Counted from the stretch's first letter, positions 1,618-63,051 are shown. The stretch: DNA of 64,000 bases from Octopus sinensis (GCF_006345805.1 NC_043005.1:59272001-59336000), one strand, 5' to 3'. Translations and numbers: made by a program. The notes: generated from the letters alone by a model not told the origin.

Positions 1618-2977
1618 TGTGTGTGTCTGTCTGTCTGTCTGTCTGTGTGTGTCGGTTATATGTGTAGACTAAAAGATGAATCGAATTCAGTAGAAAAAGA
1701 AATTAAATGTTCGTGGTTTTATGAAATGACAATATCACCGCAAGCTAAGGGTAATGATTTTAACAGCGAATTGTAACGTCATTTTCAGCCTTGGCTAGTT
1801 CTTTCTCTACACTATATAACGGGAATAAAAGTAGGCGCCATTACGTGAGCATCCAAACTGTCAAAAATAACAGCCAAAGTTCCCTCAATTCATATTGTAT
1901 CAATTTTATACAAAAGGAAAGAAATATTTGATAATGTGTTATTGAGTACGGTTTATGAAAATACTCGAGAATGGTCGAGACTGTATCGCTTTTGTTCATA
2001 AATGGATTTCACTGGTCTAAATTGGTCAGTTGGAAACTGCACGACAGAAGTACCATATATGGTCTCAAATTCTTTGAGAAACAAGACTAGACATTTTTGG
2101 AATAGAGCAAACATCAATTAAATAGACTCACTATTATTTTCTAATTAATTTAATGATTGTCACTGGACACGTGGAAAAGGAAAAACTATAAGGCATCACT
2201 AAACTCTACTAGACATATATTCTAGCATTGTGCATTCTCGACTAGTCCTCCATCGCACCACTCTTAATGATTTTTAAATATTGGGTTTGTATTCATGATT
2301 TTACTTTCACAGTATGTATACTACTGATTTAAGGATAGCAAACGTAATTACTCTCTCTCTCACACACACAAAACAACACACACACTCTGTATACGTACAT
2401 ACACCTACACATATATATGCATCTGTGTGTGTGTATATATATATATATTATAATATTTGATTGGACGCCACGCATCCATTTCCAAGTTGTAATATATATA
2501 AGAAATTATATATATAGTTTTAATATAATTTTTAATATATCGTCCGGTTTCGCTTTAGCTATTCATGATATTATGGTTTACTTATTTGAATATGTATTTT
2601 CTTAAGAAGAAATTTTGCCCATGTTGTATGTGATGATATTTACGAGTGTATGACTGCGCAAGTAGAAAAATAAGGGGAAGTAATTGGTTATTATTATTAT
2701 TGTTATTGTTGTGGGCAAGGGAGATAGCTGTTCAGCTTTCGGTTAGAGGAGGGGGATATATCGATGTACAGACAAAAAAGGTTTCGAAAAACTTGTTTAG
2801 TGAGGGGATTTATGTACAGTGATGTAATCGTGAATTGAAATATGTAAAAATATAAAAGTTGGTTATAAAAGTTGGATGAGCTACGGATAATTAATTATTA
2901 ATTAATTATCTTATTAGTTGATTTATTTGGTCAGTAACAGCGAAACTTATATATATATATATATGCATATATCTACG

Positions 2978-3010
<33 letters not shown>

Positions 3011-3013
3011 ATA

Positions 3014-3098
<85 letters not shown>

Positions 3099-3592
3099 AT
3101 ATGTATATATGTGTATATATATCAATATTATATCCAAAATACACTTCGAATGATTTTTTCATAATGTCATGCCACACTTTCATTATTCAGTTTTCGATGT
3201 CACCTCAAAGATGCCATCGTTTTGAACCAAGAAAGTTGTTGGTTGATTTCCTGTTTGAAGACGGAATTACGTGATATGCTGTGGCATCACGAAACGATTC
3301 ATAGCATATCCTGGTGATTGTGTTATATTAAACTACAATATATTCTGCTATACCGGCATTTTAATACTCTCATCTGATATATGGAAAGTACACATAAGCT
3401 ACAAAGATACAGTCACACACTCGTATAAATACATTACCTTTAGTTCTCGAAGACACAGCCCATGACTATGAAGAAATCATATTATTTCTACATAATAGCT
3501 TACGATTGCAAAAATGTTTTAATGCAACCATATATTTTCAAAGGTAAATAAAATTATAGATACGAAATATTTTTATAAGGATAAGGCATTGA

Positions 3593-3630
<38 letters not shown>

Positions 3631-3866
3631 TACACGCACGCACGCACGCACACACTAACGTACACAAATACACTTTTTCTTCTTTTTCTTCGTTAGAAAT
3701 ATAACAGGTACAAAATGTTGAGCTTACGGAAATTCTAAAGTATGACCACTAATTTCAAAATTCGCTCTTACATAAACCCTGATAATGTGAGCTCAATATA
3801 AACTGGGCGGGAGGCATGCTTTCGCTGAAATGATTGTATCTGGGCCAATCAAGTAAGGAGATGGGT

Positions 3867-4014
3867 GTGCTTATTTTATCGATCCCGAAAGGATGAAAGG
3901 AAAGGTCAACCTCGGCGGAGTTAGAACTCAGAACGGAGAAACGGATGGAACACCGCTAAGCATCTTGCCTGATGTGGTAACGATTCTGCCAGCGCTCCGC
4001 CCTAATAATAATAA

Positions 4015-4086
<72 letters not shown>

Positions 4087-4498
4087 TAATAATAACCCTT
4101 TCTGCTATAGGCACAAGTTCTGGAATTTTGTGGGAGGCGGATAGTCGATTTATCGACTCCTAGTGTTTCACTGGCACTTAATTTATAGTCCCCGAAAGAT
4201 TGAAAGGTAAAGTCGATCTCGGCTAAATTTAAATTTAAAACGTAAAGACAGACGAAACGCCAACTCGCCGCCTAAAGAATAATAATCTTTTCTATTATAG
4301 GCACAAGGCCTGAAATTTGGAGGAGATTTTTAAGTCGATTACATCGACGTCAGTACTAAACTGGTAGTTATTTGATCGACCGCGAAATGATGACAGATAA
4401 AGTTGACCTCCGTGGAATTTGAACCCAGAACGTAAAGACGGACGAAATGCCACTAAGTATTTTGTCCGGCGTGCTAAGGATTCTGCCAGCTCGCCTCC
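3867..4498 (-). mobile_element. Cluster of three tandem SINE family-A copies separated by (AAT)n
   Basis: Three reverse copies of GGCGGCGAGCTGGCAGAATCGTTAGC...GGTCGACTTTGCCTTTCATCCTTTCGGGGTCGATAAA... at 3867-4002, 4095-4272 and 4285-4498. Confidence 0.85.
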
Positions 4499-4522
4499 TA
4501 GATAATAATAATAATAATAATA

Positions 4523-4560
<38 letters not shown>

Positions 4561-4585
4561 AATAATAATAATGATAAAAACTGAC

Positions 4586-4960
4586 GATAAATGGTATAAA
4601 CGTGCCAAACAATGTTCAAGATAACGACTAGGCCACAATCATCTGAGGCATACCTGTTCAAACCGACAAAGAAATAAAAGCTAATCTTCCAAACACAATA
4701 CTTAAGGATTGGAAAAAAAACCCTGCTTACTGTTAGACATTGCAGGGCCTTCTGACCAAAATGTTGCCCAAAAGGAAGTGGAGAAAATGTAAATGTTATA
4801 AAGACCTCGGAATTGAAGTATTCAAGATATGTATCATGAAGGTGAAAACAATACCAATAATAATTAGAGTACTGGGAATGATAAAAAAAAAACATATGAA
4901 CAAAAACGTAGAAGCTATACCTGGATCCTCAACAAACACTACACACTATCCAAAAACAAA
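4586..4960 (+). mobile_element. R4/Dong-like non-LTR retrotransposon 3' fragment (restriction-like endonuclease domain), decayed
   Basis: Pieces translate as KWYK..VPNNVQDND*ATII*GIPVQTDKEIKANLPNTILKD..TCLLLDIAGPSDQNVAQKEVEK..YKDLGIEV...IPIIIRVLG, matching the RLE pattern WD.PIQTD...NRPD..D...E.K..KY.DL. Lies between TAA/TGA repeats. Confidence 0.75.
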
Positions 4961-5340
4961 GATCTGTAAGGAACAGCCCACAACCTATGCGAGACACTAT
5001 CAGTTCAATAATGCACCGTAAACAAATCAATCCACAAAACAAGATTCTCTATACAGCAAATATCCAATGAAATAAACTACCACCAGCAAGCTAGATACCC
5101 AATACATTACACGCATAACTCACAATACAAACAGTAATACAACAAAAGACTGCACCACACCCCAAAAAACAAAAAACAAAAAAATCAAAAAGAAAAAAAA
5201 GAAACTGATCAATATAATACCAGGAAGAGTTTGCACACTTCCAACAACAAAAATGAACACACAATGCTGCACATAGTAGAAATTTGCCCGAAACTATCAA
5301 AGGTAGAACAATGATAATGATCATAATGCTAATAATAATA

Positions 5341-5799: not shown

Positions 5800-6340
5800 T
5801 ATTGGGTTGTCCGGAAAGTTCGTGCCGATTTATAGTAGCTTACCTTTCGACTTATTTTAGATCATGGTTGAGTCTATTAAAATAGGATTTGACTGCACCT
5901 CCATTAAGAGCACAGTTTAAGCTATCTTTTCGTGGAAGAAGGTTTATGTTCCTATAACCTGTGTTAATTCTGTAACCCTTTAAAATGGAAGATAAAGTTC
6001 ATTTTCGGCACTTGATACTTTGGGAACCAGACAAAATTTGATGCAGCTCGGCTGGGATGTGTTACCCCACCCTCCATATTCACCAGATATTGCTCCTTCG
6101 GATTTCCACTTATTCAGGTCTCTGCAGAATAGTCTTAATGGTAAAAATTTCAATTCCTTGGATGACGTAAAAAGATACCTTGATGAATTCTTTGCCATGA
6201 AACCACCTTAATTCTGGAAAGAGGGTATTTTCAAGTTAAAGGAAAGATGGAGACGCATTGTGCAACAAAATAGTTCATATTTGGTTGATTAAAAATGTAA
6301 TGGCAAGTATTTATTGACATTTTTCTTTTGTCTTTAAATG
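5800..6340 (+). mobile_element. Internally deleted mariner element
   Basis: 5' TIR TA-TTGGGTTGTCCGGAAAGTTCG. ATG 5985 MEDKVHFRHLILW fused directly to LGWDVLPHPPYSPDIAPSDFHLFRSLQNSLNGK...KLKERWRRIVQQNSSYLVD*. No 3' TIR seen. Confidence 0.9.
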
Positions 6341-6447
6341 ATTGGTTTAGTTAGGAACAATACGTCATGAATGTGTGAGTTTACGCGTACAGAGGGAGAG
6401 AGAGAGAGAGAGGGGGGAGAGAGAGACACAAGGTATAGTGTTCATAT

Positions 6448-19040: not shown

Positions 19041-19301
19041 TCGTGACCACCGTGACCGACCAGACTATCAGATGTTGCTACACCTCGCTGGTCACAATGC
19101 GCTTCAAATGACACCACACCGCTGGCTAAGAGAGCAGAAGAAAGAGAGAAAGTTGTGGCGAAAGAGTACAGCAGGGTCGCCACCAACCCCTGCCGGAGTC
19201 TCGTGGAGCTTCTAGGTGTTTTCTAGGTGGGGCTTTGTGAATCGAAACCACGAACCTACGACCGCGAGTCCGCTGCTCTAACCACTGAGCCATTGCGCCT
19301 C

Positions 19302-20930: not shown

Positions 20931-21384
<454 letters not shown>

Positions 21385-21831: not shown

Positions 21832-22424
21832 ATATACACACATTTATATCTGTTTGTATGTGTATATGCCTGTCTGTTTTTCTCTATATATACATGTATA
21901 TTTATCATGAATGTAGGTTTTTATGTATGATTCTATGCATTTATGTGTGTGTGTGTGTATGTTTTTGGTTGTATTTGTGTGTGTGTGCGTGTGCGTGTGT
22001 TTGTGAATGTGTGTGTTCAAGTTTTTATATTTGATCATGTAGTGATATATTTCTCTTATATCGAAAAAAAATCTGCAATGGCATCTACATTAATCCGGAT
22101 ATAAATGCTGCAATGACGATGTTCGAGAGCCAAGATCTACGTCCATTTTATATGGACGACTTAAGAAACCAAGCCTTTTAAAACAGAAATTTATTGTTTT
22201 GTTTCTATTTACTAAGATTTACCTCTTCCATAATATATGTTTCTGTTGTTAACGAACTGGTTCCTTTGTATTAGTCAGTTTTGAAATGTTTCCACGAATG
22301 TTTCATGTATAGTTTGCAGTTGTAGCAGCAAATTGTCATCTTTTGTCAGAAATCGGTTAGTTATCAAGGTGGGTATCTGCCCCGGGTATAAAAGTTATCG
22401 GTATTGACCATATATTGGCAGGCT

Positions 22425-22560
22425 TCAATCGGTCGAATTTCCTCAAATGCTTATTTAATAAATTTCGATACTATAGGTTGATTGATCGAATTTCATAAGA
22501 CAAGCAATTGCCCGTATTTCATCAGACAGCTGATGGAATTTCATCAGCCCGACAGAATTT
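22425..22560 (+). repeat. Shorter, more decayed array of the same 26-bp unit (about 5 units)
   Basis: ggtcgaatttcctcaaatg, ttgatcgaatttcataagac, gacagctgatggaatttcatcag. Same orientation as 25081-25640. Confidence 0.7.
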
Positions 22561-22640
22561 TTATAGACTATAGAAGAGGACTTAGTATAGGTTACATACG
22601 ATAAGTTACAGTGTAGGTTATAGACTTAACTTACTAGCTA

Positions 22641-22806
22641 TGTAAATAGAGAATACTAACGAGTTCTCTATGGATACCGTATTTATTACGAGTGGTTTGT
22701 AAACGTATCTAACGAGCGAAAGCGAGTTAGATACGTTTACAAGCCACGAGTTGTAATAAATACGGTATCCATAGGGAATGAGTTGGGTATTTTATTTATT
22801 ACACAC
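22641..22806 (+). repeat. Long imperfect inverted repeat (hairpin) at the recombinase-element 3' end
   Basis: 22692-22713 pairs with 22726-22747 (21/22 plus one T.G). 22663-22689 pairs with 22750-22779 (two G.T, 3-nt bulge). Apex GCGAAAGC 22716-22723. Confidence 0.95.
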
Positions 22807-23134
22807 GAATAAACGACCATATTTTATTAATTTAATAATTAAATTCTTCACATCATGTTGAAGCGCGCATGAATACAGCTTGATTTCACGTCAGTGACGT
22901 CACAATGTGTAACTGTAAAAGGTGTCATGCCGCAGGAAGATAGTCCGACTTTATAACGCTAAGTTTTCAGGTGAAATGACTGATAACTGATGACTATTTA
23001 ACATTTTGTTAACATTCAAGTTCACGTTCAAGAAATACATAACACAGATTGAATCTTCAATAACTTTAATAATACTCAAACATGTTTTCGAGTAGCAATG
23101 TCAGTCAGAGTAGAGCACAATAGTCCAGGAAAAC

Positions 23135-24778
23135 TTAACAATCCTGATTATCTGTGAGACGAGGTCGCTTTGCATCTGAACCAAAGAAGTTCACATTGAT
23201 TGTTCCCCCATATATTGGAGCCGAGAAAATGGAGTGCAATGAACCAAAGCAAGTGACAGCGTTCCGAGATTGACTCGACGTAACGTTGACGGTGGAGGGG
23301 AGTTCACTTGCACTCATTGCTGCTGTGTGTGACGGAGGTACAAGCGAACCAGGCTGGTCGTTGTTGCTACTAAGGATGTTACTGATGGCACGATGACGAT
23401 CCATGGAAATATTGCTGTAACTATTGATGCTTTGCACATTACGATGTCCAGATATCTGCATGATTTCAGTTGGAGGAATGTTCTGGTCAGCGAGCTTCTG
23501 TACAAGGTATTTGCGTGCTGAATGGTTCGTGAATCTTCGATTGTCCAAACCAGCTGATTTAGCCATCCTTTTCATAATTGTACCTAGTTTGTTGACACCG
23601 ACCGGTTGACGTTTAAACCACGGATGAGAATGGGAGGCATCTTTGCAGTTGGTGGCCAAATAAAATGGTGAATCCGGCGATGAATAATCTGATGGTCTCA
23701 GATCAGCAAAACGCTTGTACAGGTTAACTGGACAACGCTCATCATTCGTCGCCCATGCTTTTGGGTAGATGTTACGTGCATGGTCGAGATTATCACCTTG
23801 ACAAGTTTTGGACTGTCGCTCCCTAAACTGAAGGAATTCCTTGCCTTCATTGTCAACATGCAAAGAAACGTCGCCCCATCACATGTCGTTGTGAGGTTTG
23901 ACACTCCGGATACCAAAGTGAACGGTGTTGTTCCACCATAGCGTGTTGAGGATGGATTCAGGTGTGTTCGGACCGAGCTGGTCACATTCCCATAGCTTGT
24001 TGATATCATCGTCGGAGAGAGATTCCGCGCGTTAAGGTAGGTTTCCCATTCCTTCACTTTTCAACAGCTTTTGCTTCATTTTTAGTACGTCATGTAGTTT
24101 CACGATGTCCCGTCCGAGAATAGTGACGTCGAGTAGTGTTTTGACTTCAGATATCTTTCAATACTGGATAACATTCCCCTCAAAGATGAAGGTTCATAGT
24201 TGCTACCGTTCGGCTTTCGTAACGAAATAAAGAAAGTACAGAGAATGTCACAAAGTTCGCTTTTTTTCGATAGATTCAATTGGACGCGTGTCGCCATTTG
24301 TCGCCATGAAAGCAAACAATCGTTTAACATCATAGTTTGTTTTCCGAAGAGTATTTTTATTTTGATTACCTTGAACGAATTTATCAATTCCAGAATGATC
24401 ATACCTCGGTTGAAATTCAAGATCATTATGGCTATCATCAAAGAAATCGCCACGAAGAAGATCATTGTACACCTCATCAGGGATGTTAAATGCAAGGTTC
24501 GATGACAATCCACTCGTCGATGACACTGTTTCAGGTACCTTTGTTAACCTGTATCCAGCAACATGTCGAATTTGGCCAGTATTTATCTTCACATTGAACA
24601 TTCTGTATGTTCCAAGAGGTTGAACAACGGATAATAATCTTCCCCCATCTTTACCATTAATCTTAACAAAATCATTCACCTTGATATCGATAACATTAAC
24701 TATCTTGTTGATAGATCTATCTGCACTGCAACAGTATCGACGAGCAGACGATATATGTTGTGATTTTTTTGGCAACAA
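23135..24778 (-). pseudogene. Tyrosine recombinase, Crypton/DUF3504 family (ZMYM/QRICH1/KCTD1-related domain), about 547 codons when repaired
   Basis: Hand reconstruction: ...IDKFVQGNQNKNTLRKTNYDVKRLF...[+1 fs in T7 run 24261-24267] ELCDILCTFFISLRKPNGSNYEPSSLRGMLSSIERYLKSKHY [-1 fs near 24110] VKLHDVLKMKQKLLKSEGMGNLP*RAESLSDDDINKLWECDQLGPNTPESILNTLWWNNTVHFGIRSVKPHNDM*WGD...RERQSKT...RCPVNLYKRF...PFYL...WFKRQPVGVNKLGTIMKRMAKSAGL...FTNHSARK...IMQISGHRNVQSINSY. Stops at 24032-24034 and 23879-23881. Catalytic R 23906-23908, H 23522-23524, R 23513-23515, H 23444-23446, Y 23417-23419. Confidence 0.92.
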
Positions 24779-25080
24779 AAAATTGAATTATGACCAGAAA
24801 TGTTTATATTTTATCTGTATATGACTTTAAGTGATATCTGGTATAAAAAAGATAGTATGTTTGTTTAATTACATGGCTACATTCTACCGGCTCGTGAAAG
24901 TTTAGTTGTAACTTATGAATGACAAAAGTAGTGCCGTCACCGTGACCTCGGGTCATCACCATGGATTGACCAATCAGAAGCAGCGCTCGCAGTATCTGAC
25001 ATATGTTAGATACCAAAAATATCTCAAAGTGTTCTCACTCACATGTGTGTAATAATCTATAATACAACCTAAAATGACGA

Positions 25081-25640
25081 GGACAGTTCTGCGAATTTTC
25101 TGAGCCTGACAGTTGAGATCGAACTTCATTGAACGGGCAACTGGTCGAATTTGATCCAATTTGATTCAGGGAGTTTCTCAGACGAGCAGTTGATCGAGGG
25201 TCAGTTGATCGAATCTTATTTGATGAACAGTTGATCAAATTTCATTAAATGAACAACCGATCGAAAATTTTAACTGGACAGTTTCTCGAATTTCACGTGA
25301 CAAAGTTGATCGACTTTCATAAGATGGGCAGTCGATCGAATTCCACCAAATGGACAGGTGATCGAATTTCATCGAACAGAGACAATTGATTGAATTTCAT
25401 ACAACAGACAGGGGCTCCAATATCATTAAAAGGGCAGTTGATCAAATTTGGTGAGACAAACAGTTGATCGAATTTCATCAGATGGACAATTGCTCGAATT
25501 CCTTTCAACTGACAGTTGATCCAACTTCATCTTTGGGCACATGATCAATTTCTGTCAAATTGACAGTTGATCGAATTTTAACAATCGGACGTTTGACCTA
25601 ATTTCAGCAAATGTGTGTTGGTCGAATTTAATGGGCTATG
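25081..25640 (+). repeat. Degenerate 26-bp minisatellite array, about 20 units, consensus GACAGTTGATCGAATTTCATCAAATG
   Basis: Units read directly, e.g. aacagttgatcgaatttcatcagatg, ggcagtcgatcgaattccaccaaatg, gacagttgatcgaattttaacaatcg. Confidence 0.9.
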
Positions 25641-29750: not shown

Positions 29751-29826
29751 ATTATATATATATATATATATTATATGTTATATATATATATATATATTAT
29801 ATATATATATATATACATAGATATAT

Positions 29827-30450
29827 AATTTAAATAATCAGAAAATGGAGAAAACTTTTGATCAGCAAACAAATTGGACCATTCTGTACATTATGTTTCA
29901 ATGCAAAACATGACATAACGTTTCTGTGACATAACATTATTACGGCCGTTTCCGCTTCCAATGCCAGTCAGTGCTTACGAAAGAATTACGAAAATAATAT
30001 TTTCATTAGACATTCGATCTAGTGCATGGAGCTCCATCAGAGTGAAAACAAATGCGTAAAATAAAATAAACGGAGGCTCAATATATTAAGATCGACTTCA
30101 AAGCTCTACGCTGGAAGATGGTATGATTTTAATATATTGAGCTTCCTGGCTTCTTCCCGAGGCCATGTTCTTTCCTATTCGCTCTTCCCTTCGTTTATTT
30201 TATTTTACGCATTTGTTTTCATTCTGATGAAGCTCCATGTACTAGATCGAATGTGCTATGACAGTGATGAATATTATACTCGTAATTCTTTCGTAAGCAT
30301 CGTCTGGCATTGGAAGCGGAAACGGCCGGAAGAATTGTTATGTTATAGAAATGTTATGTCTTGTTTTGTATTAAAATATAATCTACAGATGTGGTCCAAT
30401 TTGTTTGTTTGTTGATCAAAAGTTTTATCCATTTTCTGATTATTTAAATT
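29827..30450. mobile_element. Foldback-type MITE, almost entirely an inverted repeat (about 260-bp arms)
   Basis: AATTTAAATAATCAGAAAATGGA... (29827) is the reverse complement of ...TCCATTTTCTGATTATTTAAATT (30450). Arms align throughout at roughly 85% identity by eye. 31-nt loop 30094-30124. Confidence 0.85.
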
Positions 30451-30563
30451 TGATTTCTGATAAACTCGTTTATTCTGTTATTACCTGTACCCTACGTGCA
30501 TAGTGTGCCTGCATACCCATGCCTAGGGATAGCACAAAGTAACTGATACCGATAGTAAATACG

Positions 30564-61445: not shown

Positions 61446-61776
61446 TTTACAAAAAAACTAAAACTAAAAAACGAGTAAAGGAAAAAGGTTTTGGATGGTC
61501 TGACATATATAAGAAGAGCAGCGCACATGGCTTTTTTTTCTGCAAGGTACAGAGAAATGAAGGAAACAAACACCAATATATTGAGTTACTTTCTTAATCA
61601 ATCTCTGCACTAAATACTTGCAATATGGTGTGGACTTTGCTAAAGGCACTGAAGGGCCAGGAGATAGTGTTAGTGCAGGCAATACATATTTAATTTCGTT
61701 TTTGGATTTGGTTTGCAAGATTCTTTATATGAGTTCGTGTGTTGAAGCATATTCTGTTGTGCCTGGGGAGAATAAT

Positions 61777-61949
61777 TTTCTTTCTGTGCCTTATAATGTA
61801 ACACACTCGCCGGTAAAATTTCCACTTATTTCTTATTTTTATTTTTTTTTATTTTCTATTTTATTATTATTATTTTTTTTTATTTTATTATTTTATTTTT
61901 TTGGAAATGTTACCGGTGAGTGTGTTACATTATAAGGCACAGAAAGAAA
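61777..61949. mobile_element. 173-bp MITE/hairpin with 47-bp TIRs and a T-rich spacer
   Basis: 61777-61823 vs 61903-61949, 45/47 complementary. Confidence 0.8.
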
Positions 61950-62611
61950 TTGACTCTACCCACGCACAATAGTACATATTTAATGTTCTACCAAAAACAT
62001 TTATACTTAGCTGGCACCAGATAATATCTTTCTATTTACGCGACTGGTACGAAGTGAAGGCAATTTCATTATCGTATACGGAAGAAAATACATTTCCATG
62101 CTTCCAAACAGCAGTATGAATCTTGGAACTATATGATTTCAAAATAATCTTCTTACCCATACGGCCATTCGTGCACACCGAACAATTTGAAAAATACTTT
62201 TATCAGTATTAATATACGCTATCTAAAAATACAGACCCATAATATGCTTCCTTCTTCAAACAATGTTTCTTTTAAGCCTCACTTACCCGCATACAATCCC
62301 TAATAAAATCAATAATCGATATCGTGTAGGAGTCTTGGCTGCAGTGAAATTCTCTAAAATGTGATAAAAATGTAACACTAAAAGAAGATTTCTAATATTT
62401 TTTCCAATTAAAAAGTTTGTATGTAAGTATATATCTGTTCGTGTGTGTGTGTAGTTTGATGCAATCTGAAGAATTCAATAGCAAACTTTTATTGATAATA
62501 TGTACTTTCAATTATTCTATTGAAAACCATCCTTCTTTAAGGGATACATTAAAAGTGCTTAAACTTTCGACCTCTTCTAGTGAACTTTTACACACACACA
62601 CACACACACAC

Positions 62612-62643
<32 letters not shown>

Positions 62644-62645
<2 letters not shown>

Positions 62646-62724
62646 CAGGGATGGCCATAAGTCGCTTTACTCATTTCTTTATTATCATTAGAAATGGGTA
62701 AAGCGATTTATGCCTATCCCTGTA
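62644..62724. mobile_element. 77-bp Tc1/mariner mini-element (MADE-like) in a TA site
   Basis: TA-CAGGGATGGCCATAAGTCGCTTTACTCATTTCT, 11-nt spacer, AGAAATGGGTAAAGCGATTTATGCCTATCCCTG-TA. 29/33 complementary. Confidence 0.85.
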
Positions 62725-62768
62725 TATATGTTTTTGTATGCGTGCGCGCATTGTGATATATGTATTTT

Positions 62769-62814
<46 letters not shown>

Positions 62815-63051
62815 AATATATACATGTATGTATGTATATATATATATATATACTACTAATATTAGGGAGTATAACTCCAAACTTACAAGGATTATTCAAT
62901 TTAGTATTAAATCAAATTTTACAGTATAAATATATAAAATATAAATTAGAGATAAACCCACTATTATACAACTCAAAGTGTGATAGACATAAATCAATAG
63001 TGGTTTTATCTCTAATTTATATTTTATATATATATATATATATATGTTTAT

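Follow-up and report, generated by a model that had tools for sequence, protein, structure and literature searches.

The window analysed here, a stretch of 64,000 nucleotides of Octopus sinensis DNA (GCF_006345805.1 NC_043005.1:59272001-59336000), contains only one ORF of 200 aa or more, which represents the C-terminal part of a tyrosine recombinase (YR) encoded on the minus strand. Reading of three frames extended this ORF to a decayed gene (23135-24778, minus strand) with two frameshifts and in-frame stops, in which the catalytic K, HxxR, H and Y are present, and Pfam analysis assigned DUF3504 (2.8e-26), Phage_integrase (3.4e-9) and QRICH1 domains to its product, identifying it as a decayed KIAA1958-like CryptonA recombinase. 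The gene is part of a 2415-bp element (22642-25056) that is flanked on both sides by the direct repeat CTAT (22638-22641 on the 3' side and 25057-25060 on the 5' side; ATAG on the sense strand). On the sense strand the element starts with ...tattATAG|ATTATTACACAC (from 25056 downwards) and ends with ...CTCTATTTAC|ATAGctag (22642). A 12-bp terminal inverted repeat (TIR; ATTATTACACAC, 25045-25056, minus strand) forms the 5' end and recurs as an inverted copy, here called TIR' (TTTATTACACAC, 22795-22806, plus strand), overlapping the ORF-proximal base of a fold-back that occupies 22642-22806 (plus strand) and represents the 3' end of the element; the shared TTATTACACAC is found in inverted orientation at 22796-22806. 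The gene is preceded by a 5' untranslated region (24779-25044, minus strand) with a CTGATTGG (inverted CCAAT) motif near 24970 (about 24963-24977), and is separated from the hairpin by an untranslated spacer (22807-23134, minus strand) containing AATAAA motifs next to TIR', for which a role in polyadenylation is inferred.

The element lies next to a 26-bp tandem repeat (about TTGATCGAATTTCATCAGAnnnACAG), which begins just beyond the 5' direct repeat (25075-25611) and reappears about 85 bp beyond the 3' end (22420-22560), suggesting that the Crypton inserted into or beside a satellite array. Two copies (73% identical) of a GC-rich segment of approximately 55 bp ending with ...CTCTAACCACTGAGCCAT were found at 19239-19293 and 21201-21255, each followed by long (TA)n/(CA)n microsatellites; they resemble heads of a tRNA-derived SINE, although ARAGORN detected no tRNA.

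The fold-back at the 3' end of the element

Pair-by-pair layout of the fold-back confirmed the structure described in the earlier note, including three tandem GA mismatches, main stems whose only single mismatches are G.T, and a GCGAAAGC apex. The apex (GC/GAAA/GC, 22716-22723) matches the DNA mini-hairpin consensus GCGNNAGC. GA faces GA at 22714-15/22724-25, 22690-91/22748-49 and 22661-62/22780-81, in the contexts CGAG/CGAG (22713-22716 with 22723-22726), CGAG/CGAG (22689-22692 with 22747-22750) and CGAG/TGAG (22660-22663 with 22779-22782). The 22-bp inner stem (22692-22713 with 22726-22747) contains one T.G (22696.22743), and the 27-bp outer stem (22663-22689 with 22753-22779) contains two G.T (22663.22779 and 22667.22775), with no other mismatches in either stem. 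In addition, we observed a 3-nt bulge on the 3' arm (22750-52) and small asymmetric loops near the base, which the earlier note had not mentioned. Three identical double mismatches in one context cannot arise from random decay of a palindrome, and their conservation was confirmed in homologues (see below).

When folded as DNA, the plus strand reached -49.4 kcal/mol (z = -14.6, with 0/200 shuffles as good) and the minus strand -42.7 kcal/mol (z = -11.9). However, the energy difference between the strands proved uninformative as a test, because the DNA parameters of ViennaRNA treat GA/GA as a generic loop and do not model sheared G.A, and many homologues consequently show similar energies for both strands. 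The hairpin ends 328 bp from the YR stop codon (23135-37) and is a single copy in the window. Other palindromic, MITE-like repeats in the window (29819-30458, 61754-61972, 62639-62729 and 62925-63036), including a 640-bp fold-back of 78% complementarity, are unrelated and none has GA/GA mismatches.

Related loci and element boundaries

To examine whether the hairpin is linked to this recombinase type, we fetched the DNA around related YR genes (individual loci are denoted by L numbers), the closest proteins being only about 53% identical. In 12 out of 12 assembly loci a homologous hairpin, truncated in one case, lies 130-830 bp downstream of the YR match with the GA-bearing strand antisense to the gene. 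These loci comprise L001 (two hairpins) and L002 from Littorina saxatilis, in which the apex string CGAGCGAAAGCGAG is identical to that of the window, L003-L008, including Saccostrea cucullata (L005), as well as Porites lutea (L089), Paramuricea clavata (L090) and two loci of Mizuhopecten yessoensis (L091 and L092). The YRs are diverged (39-55% identity), and their catalytic residues are invariant in the alignment. Intact copies exist in Littorina, scallop and Porites; the intact Littorina element (L002 4917-13239), annotated as a host gene ('KIAA1958 homolog', 412 aa) although it has transposon ends, lies within the span of another annotated gene, apparently in an intron. Furthermore, a metagenome scan with a YR alignment returned 80 loci, mostly of unknown host, about 26 of which carry such a hairpin 130-830 bp after the YR match, and one of these YRs is 89% identical to Porites proteins. 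Nevertheless, roughly half of the related loci with more than 900 bp of downstream sequence have no such hairpin, indicating that it belongs to a large subset of the family and is not universal to DUF3504/CryptonA.

Comparison of independent copies showed that the hairpin is the end of the element. The scallop copies L091 and L092 are 99.6% identical over 2160 bp (2831-4990) with unrelated flanks, and their hairpin (4853-4994) ends where identity ends; L092 also sits in a short tandem repeat (GGCTGTCAATATAACATACATTAA). Likewise, L003 and L007, which are 86.6% identical and derive from different assemblies, lose homology at the distal hairpin base, and L008, which is truncated exactly at the apex (about 6021) and keeps only the proximal arm, shares the same 5' end. 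In at least 12 elements the first 12-28 bp recur inverted just inside the hairpin, an arrangement seen in L003-L007, L034, L047, L062, L088, L037 and L018, whereas no 5' TIR was found for one element of L001 (element A), and only a 10/11 match at about 5689 was found in L002. In L018 and L072 the 5' end of a second copy directly follows the hairpin, and in these head-to-tail junctions the palindrome extends through TIR:TIR'. Moreover, mini-elements of about 300 bp (L001 9537-9830; L018 2384 to about 2700, the latter following a full element head-to-tail) consist of the 5' TIR, about 100 bp, TIR' and the hairpin, and are probably non-autonomous Crypton derivatives.

Short direct repeats comparable to CTAT flank other copies, namely CTGT in L010 and ATAT in L091 and L092, although this sample is small. 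The few bases between the direct repeat and the TIR differ between the near-identical scallop copies (CACAT against ACATA), which places strand exchange there, the crossover being inferred from end points and not from chemistry. Just outside the distal base of the L003 hairpin lies a perfect 28-bp inverted duplication of the terminal arm (6338-6416), a tail-to-tail partial copy suggesting template switching or recombination at the terminus. Next to this Crypton end, a different, nearly perfect 188-nt hairpin (L003 6418-6605; also L023 3691-3804) carries CGAG/CGAG tandem mismatches, one CTCG/CTCG and a C-GAA-G mini-hairpin apex, and might be a solo-hairpin relative or a second family using the same motif. 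The 5' regions of L003 (about 4530), L089 (2843-2942) and L090 (2836-2936) share the AGCCAATCAG/CTGATTGG (CCAAT-box-like) motifs with the window copy, which in the coral copies are arranged as a palindrome of approximately 100 bp just upstream of the ORF and probably represent the promoter.

Covariation and strand asymmetry

Since one global alignment of all subfamilies was too rough for pair counting, covariation was assessed in an alignment of 11 hairpins of one subfamily. Of 44 consensus pairs, 23 carry compensatory double changes, and 90.9% of cells are paired, compared with 77.0 +/- 1.1 after shuffling (0/500 reached the observed value) and 30-43% in controls with slid partners. Across subfamilies the sequences are 55-70% identical, yet 66-85% of nucleotides stay paired.

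Investigating 34 YR-linked hairpins, we observed that the 2x2 internal loops are GA/GA in 65 cases, TC/TC in five and other in 20, that G.T outnumbers A.C 62 to 18, and that GCGN(N)AGC occurs 13 times on the GA strand and four times on the other strand. The GA/GA contexts are CGAG/CGAG (36), TGAG/CGAA (12), CGAA/TGAG (7), CGAG/TGAG (1) and CGAC/GGAG (1), so that 56 of 57 loops are in 5'-Y-GA-R-3' context; the closing pairs switch from C-G to T-A together while the GA never changes. The five TC/TC loops are found in rearranged copies: the 29-nt apex module of L031 (1089-1224) is inverted relative to L033 (1265-1400), L025 (2093-2262) has a larger inversion, and L088 (4346-4509) has been converted to a near-perfect palindrome. 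It is important to point out that the hairpin counts are inflated by shared ancestry, although roughly seven sequence-distinct subfamilies all show the same polarity. GA/GA is present three times in the intact, recently moved scallop copies and is therefore a feature of working elements and not of decay. The scallop apex is an ordinary palindrome without a mini-hairpin.

Taken together, every testable part of the interpretation in the earlier note, which had proposed a single-stranded attachment site or replication/processing signal of a eukaryotic YR transposon folding on the plus strand only, held up: the hairpin is linked to Crypton-type YR genes, and its GA/GA positions are neither Watson-Crick nor random in homologues. 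The note had missed the 12-bp TIR, the flanking CTAT repeats and the crossover position at the hairpin base. The hairpin is very likely the cis-acting terminal structure of the transposon, and that it acts as folded DNA appears somewhat more likely than not, while its use as a single-stranded recombinase substrate remains at most an even possibility.

Our favoured explanation, held with about even confidence, is that the fold-back is the attachment site at the 3' end of a CryptonA-type transposon laid out as direct repeat, 5' TIR, promoter, YR gene, TIR', hairpin and direct repeat. When the two ends are joined, in a circle or at a head-to-tail junction, TIR pairs with TIR' and the palindrome lengthens by 12-28 bp on each side, the strand-exchange point lying in the few base pairs between the hairpin base and the TIR. 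We propose that the site acts as folded DNA on the strand antisense to the YR, either as a single strand or as an extruded cruciform arm, for neither of which there is direct evidence, and that TIR' and the proximal arm supply the complementary strand, so that a single strand can rebuild duplex recombinase-binding sites. The tandem sheared G.A pairs, the G.T wobbles and the GCGN(N)AGC apex would make only that strand fold well and give the otherwise symmetrical site its polarity. Arm-to-arm copying or selection for mere palindromy would remove GA/GA, and selection for any polar mark would not demand Y-GA-R, G.T over A.C or mini-hairpin apices. However, a search for two recombinase-binding boxes of inverted symmetry around the crossover gave no convincing candidates. 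In a speculative cycle, the hairpin and TIR:TIR' pairing would juxtapose the two ends when the antisense strand is single-stranded, one strand exchange at the hairpin base would release a single-stranded circle whose folded site recombines with an AT-rich target, and replication would complete the event. Such transposition through a single DNA strand, shared by molluscs and cnidarians, is a tentative reading, somewhat less likely than not, and would be mechanistically new for eukaryotes.

Among the alternatives, a purely duplex attachment site, in which the repeated ACGAG(T) motif in direct orientation on both arms serves as polar binding site for the N-terminal domain of the YR or a host factor and the palindrome only positions these sites, is the least unlikely and is not excluded. 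ACGAGT is conserved in sequence as well as in context across subfamilies, short direct repeats flank copies, and Cryptons are generally thought to move as double-stranded circles (PMC3212892). Yet this reading does not explain why variable stem sequence stays complementary, why closing pairs change in a compensatory way instead of keeping CGAG, why G.T outnumbers A.C or why apices fit the DNA mini-hairpin consensus, and it leaves TIR' and the proximal arm without a role, since a duplex-only reaction needs only the distal base and the TIR on either side of the crossover. A complementary-strand origin, priming site or SSB-free landmark of a single-stranded circular intermediate is also improbable, though it could coexist with the favoured explanation; it would fit the strand asymmetry and the occurrence of GCGN(N)AGC mini-hairpins at ssDNA phage priming sites (PMC13037366), but an origin does not require a position exactly at the terminus with the crossover at its base, and some active-looking copies lack the mini-hairpin apex.

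An RNA structure, either an antisense non-coding RNA, which the earlier note had raised because GAAA is also a GNRA loop, or a 3'-UTR element regulating the YR, is disfavoured but not excluded. Tandem G.A in a CGAG context and G.U pairs are probably favourable in RNA as well, and the G.T bias is compatible with it. On the other hand, the favoured strand is antisense to the only gene, a 3'-UTR hairpin would carry UC/UC and A.C mismatches, many apices are GNA triloops of the DNA mini-hairpin type (GCGCAGC, GCGTAGC, GCGAAGC, G-GTA-C), AATAAA signals precede the hairpin, and the position at the exact terminus is left unexplained. Rfam gave only sub-threshold mir-7386 hits on both strands, and a k-turn reading of GA plus the 3-nt bulge was rejected, as the bulge lies 3' of the GA, on the wrong side, and is not conserved in homologues. 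Resolution of the palindrome at its dyad centre in a protelomerase-like or poxvirus-like way is very unlikely: although a palindrome lies beside a YR gene, L008 is truncated at the apex and apex modules are flipped in L031 and L025, the integrated boundaries are at the base, flip orientation is rare (3 of 34) instead of 1:1, and Pfam shows only DUF3504, Phage_integrase and QRICH1. Finally, an unrelated foldback or MITE, or a palindrome kept symmetrical by arm-to-arm copying, might be suggested by the other palindromic repeats in the window but is refuted by the comparative data, as the hairpin has the same position and orientation beside diverged YRs in molluscs and cnidarians, is always found at the 3' end of a YR element or of a mini-element keeping the same TIRs, and retains GA/GA in 99.6%-identical, active-looking copies.

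Comparison with known recombination systems

By enzyme and size the element is a CryptonA, sharing with described CryptonA/DUF3504 transposons (Kojima and Jurka 2011, PMC3212892; Glomhopper 2026, PMC13465315) the recombinase family, a single ORF, a length of about 2 kb, short flanking direct repeats and non-autonomous derivatives; with one gene in 2.4 kb, it lacks the reverse transcriptase, methyltransferase, LTRs and split direct repeats that would separate it from this group towards DIRS/Ngaro. Those papers report no terminal repeats in animal Cryptons and mention no hairpin, and no description of a Crypton hairpin or palindrome was found in the literature searched, which did not extend to Repbase. 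The TIR pair and terminal fold-back of this lineage thus depart from the published description but not from the defining enzyme of the family. Crypton ends have been described as featureless and the transposition mechanism has never been shown experimentally, and animal Cryptons are the source of the ZMYM, QRICH1, KIAA1958 and KCTD1 DUF3504 domains. The hairpin now provides a precise definition of the cis-acting ends and of minimal non-autonomous elements, which should improve annotation in mollusc and coral genomes, as well as a testable hypothesis that a eukaryotic tyrosine recombinase uses folded DNA, a mechanism so far known only in bacteria.

The apex and mismatch contexts match the consensus sequences of DNA mini-hairpins (GCGNNAGC/GCGNAGC) and of sheared tandem G.A (5'-Py-GA-Pu-3'), offering a natural, repeatedly selected case of such motifs as putative biological signals in DNA. 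d(GCGAAAGC) melts at 76.5 C and r(GCGAAAGC) at 39 C, d(GCGAAGC) is likewise exceptionally stable as DNA, and mini-hairpins mark ssDNA phage origins (PMC13037366), whereas the physical structure of the present sequences is inferred from these consensus matches. In CTX phage, a folded single strand, attP(+), appears to form the duplex core site for the host tyrosine recombinases XerCD, but no ssDNA stage is known for the element described here.

The closest parallel is the integron attC site recombined by IntI (PMC8946536). The present site is not a member of that family, as the element is eukaryotic and carries its own recombinase gene, the stem is about 165 nt, RYYYAAC/GTTRRRY boxes are absent and the conserved ends are TAAATAGAG... 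and ...TTTATTAC instead, the asymmetry consists of tandem G.A pairs rather than extrahelical bases, and single-strand use is inferred only. Nevertheless, both are imperfect palindromes at the end of a mobile unit with conserved structure and mostly unconserved sequence, in both the asymmetries make one strand, the folded bottom strand in attC and, by inference, the antisense strand here, the substrate, and in both the crossover, here inferred, is at the stem base and the site is split on integration, so that the other end of the unit carries the last few bases of the palindrome.
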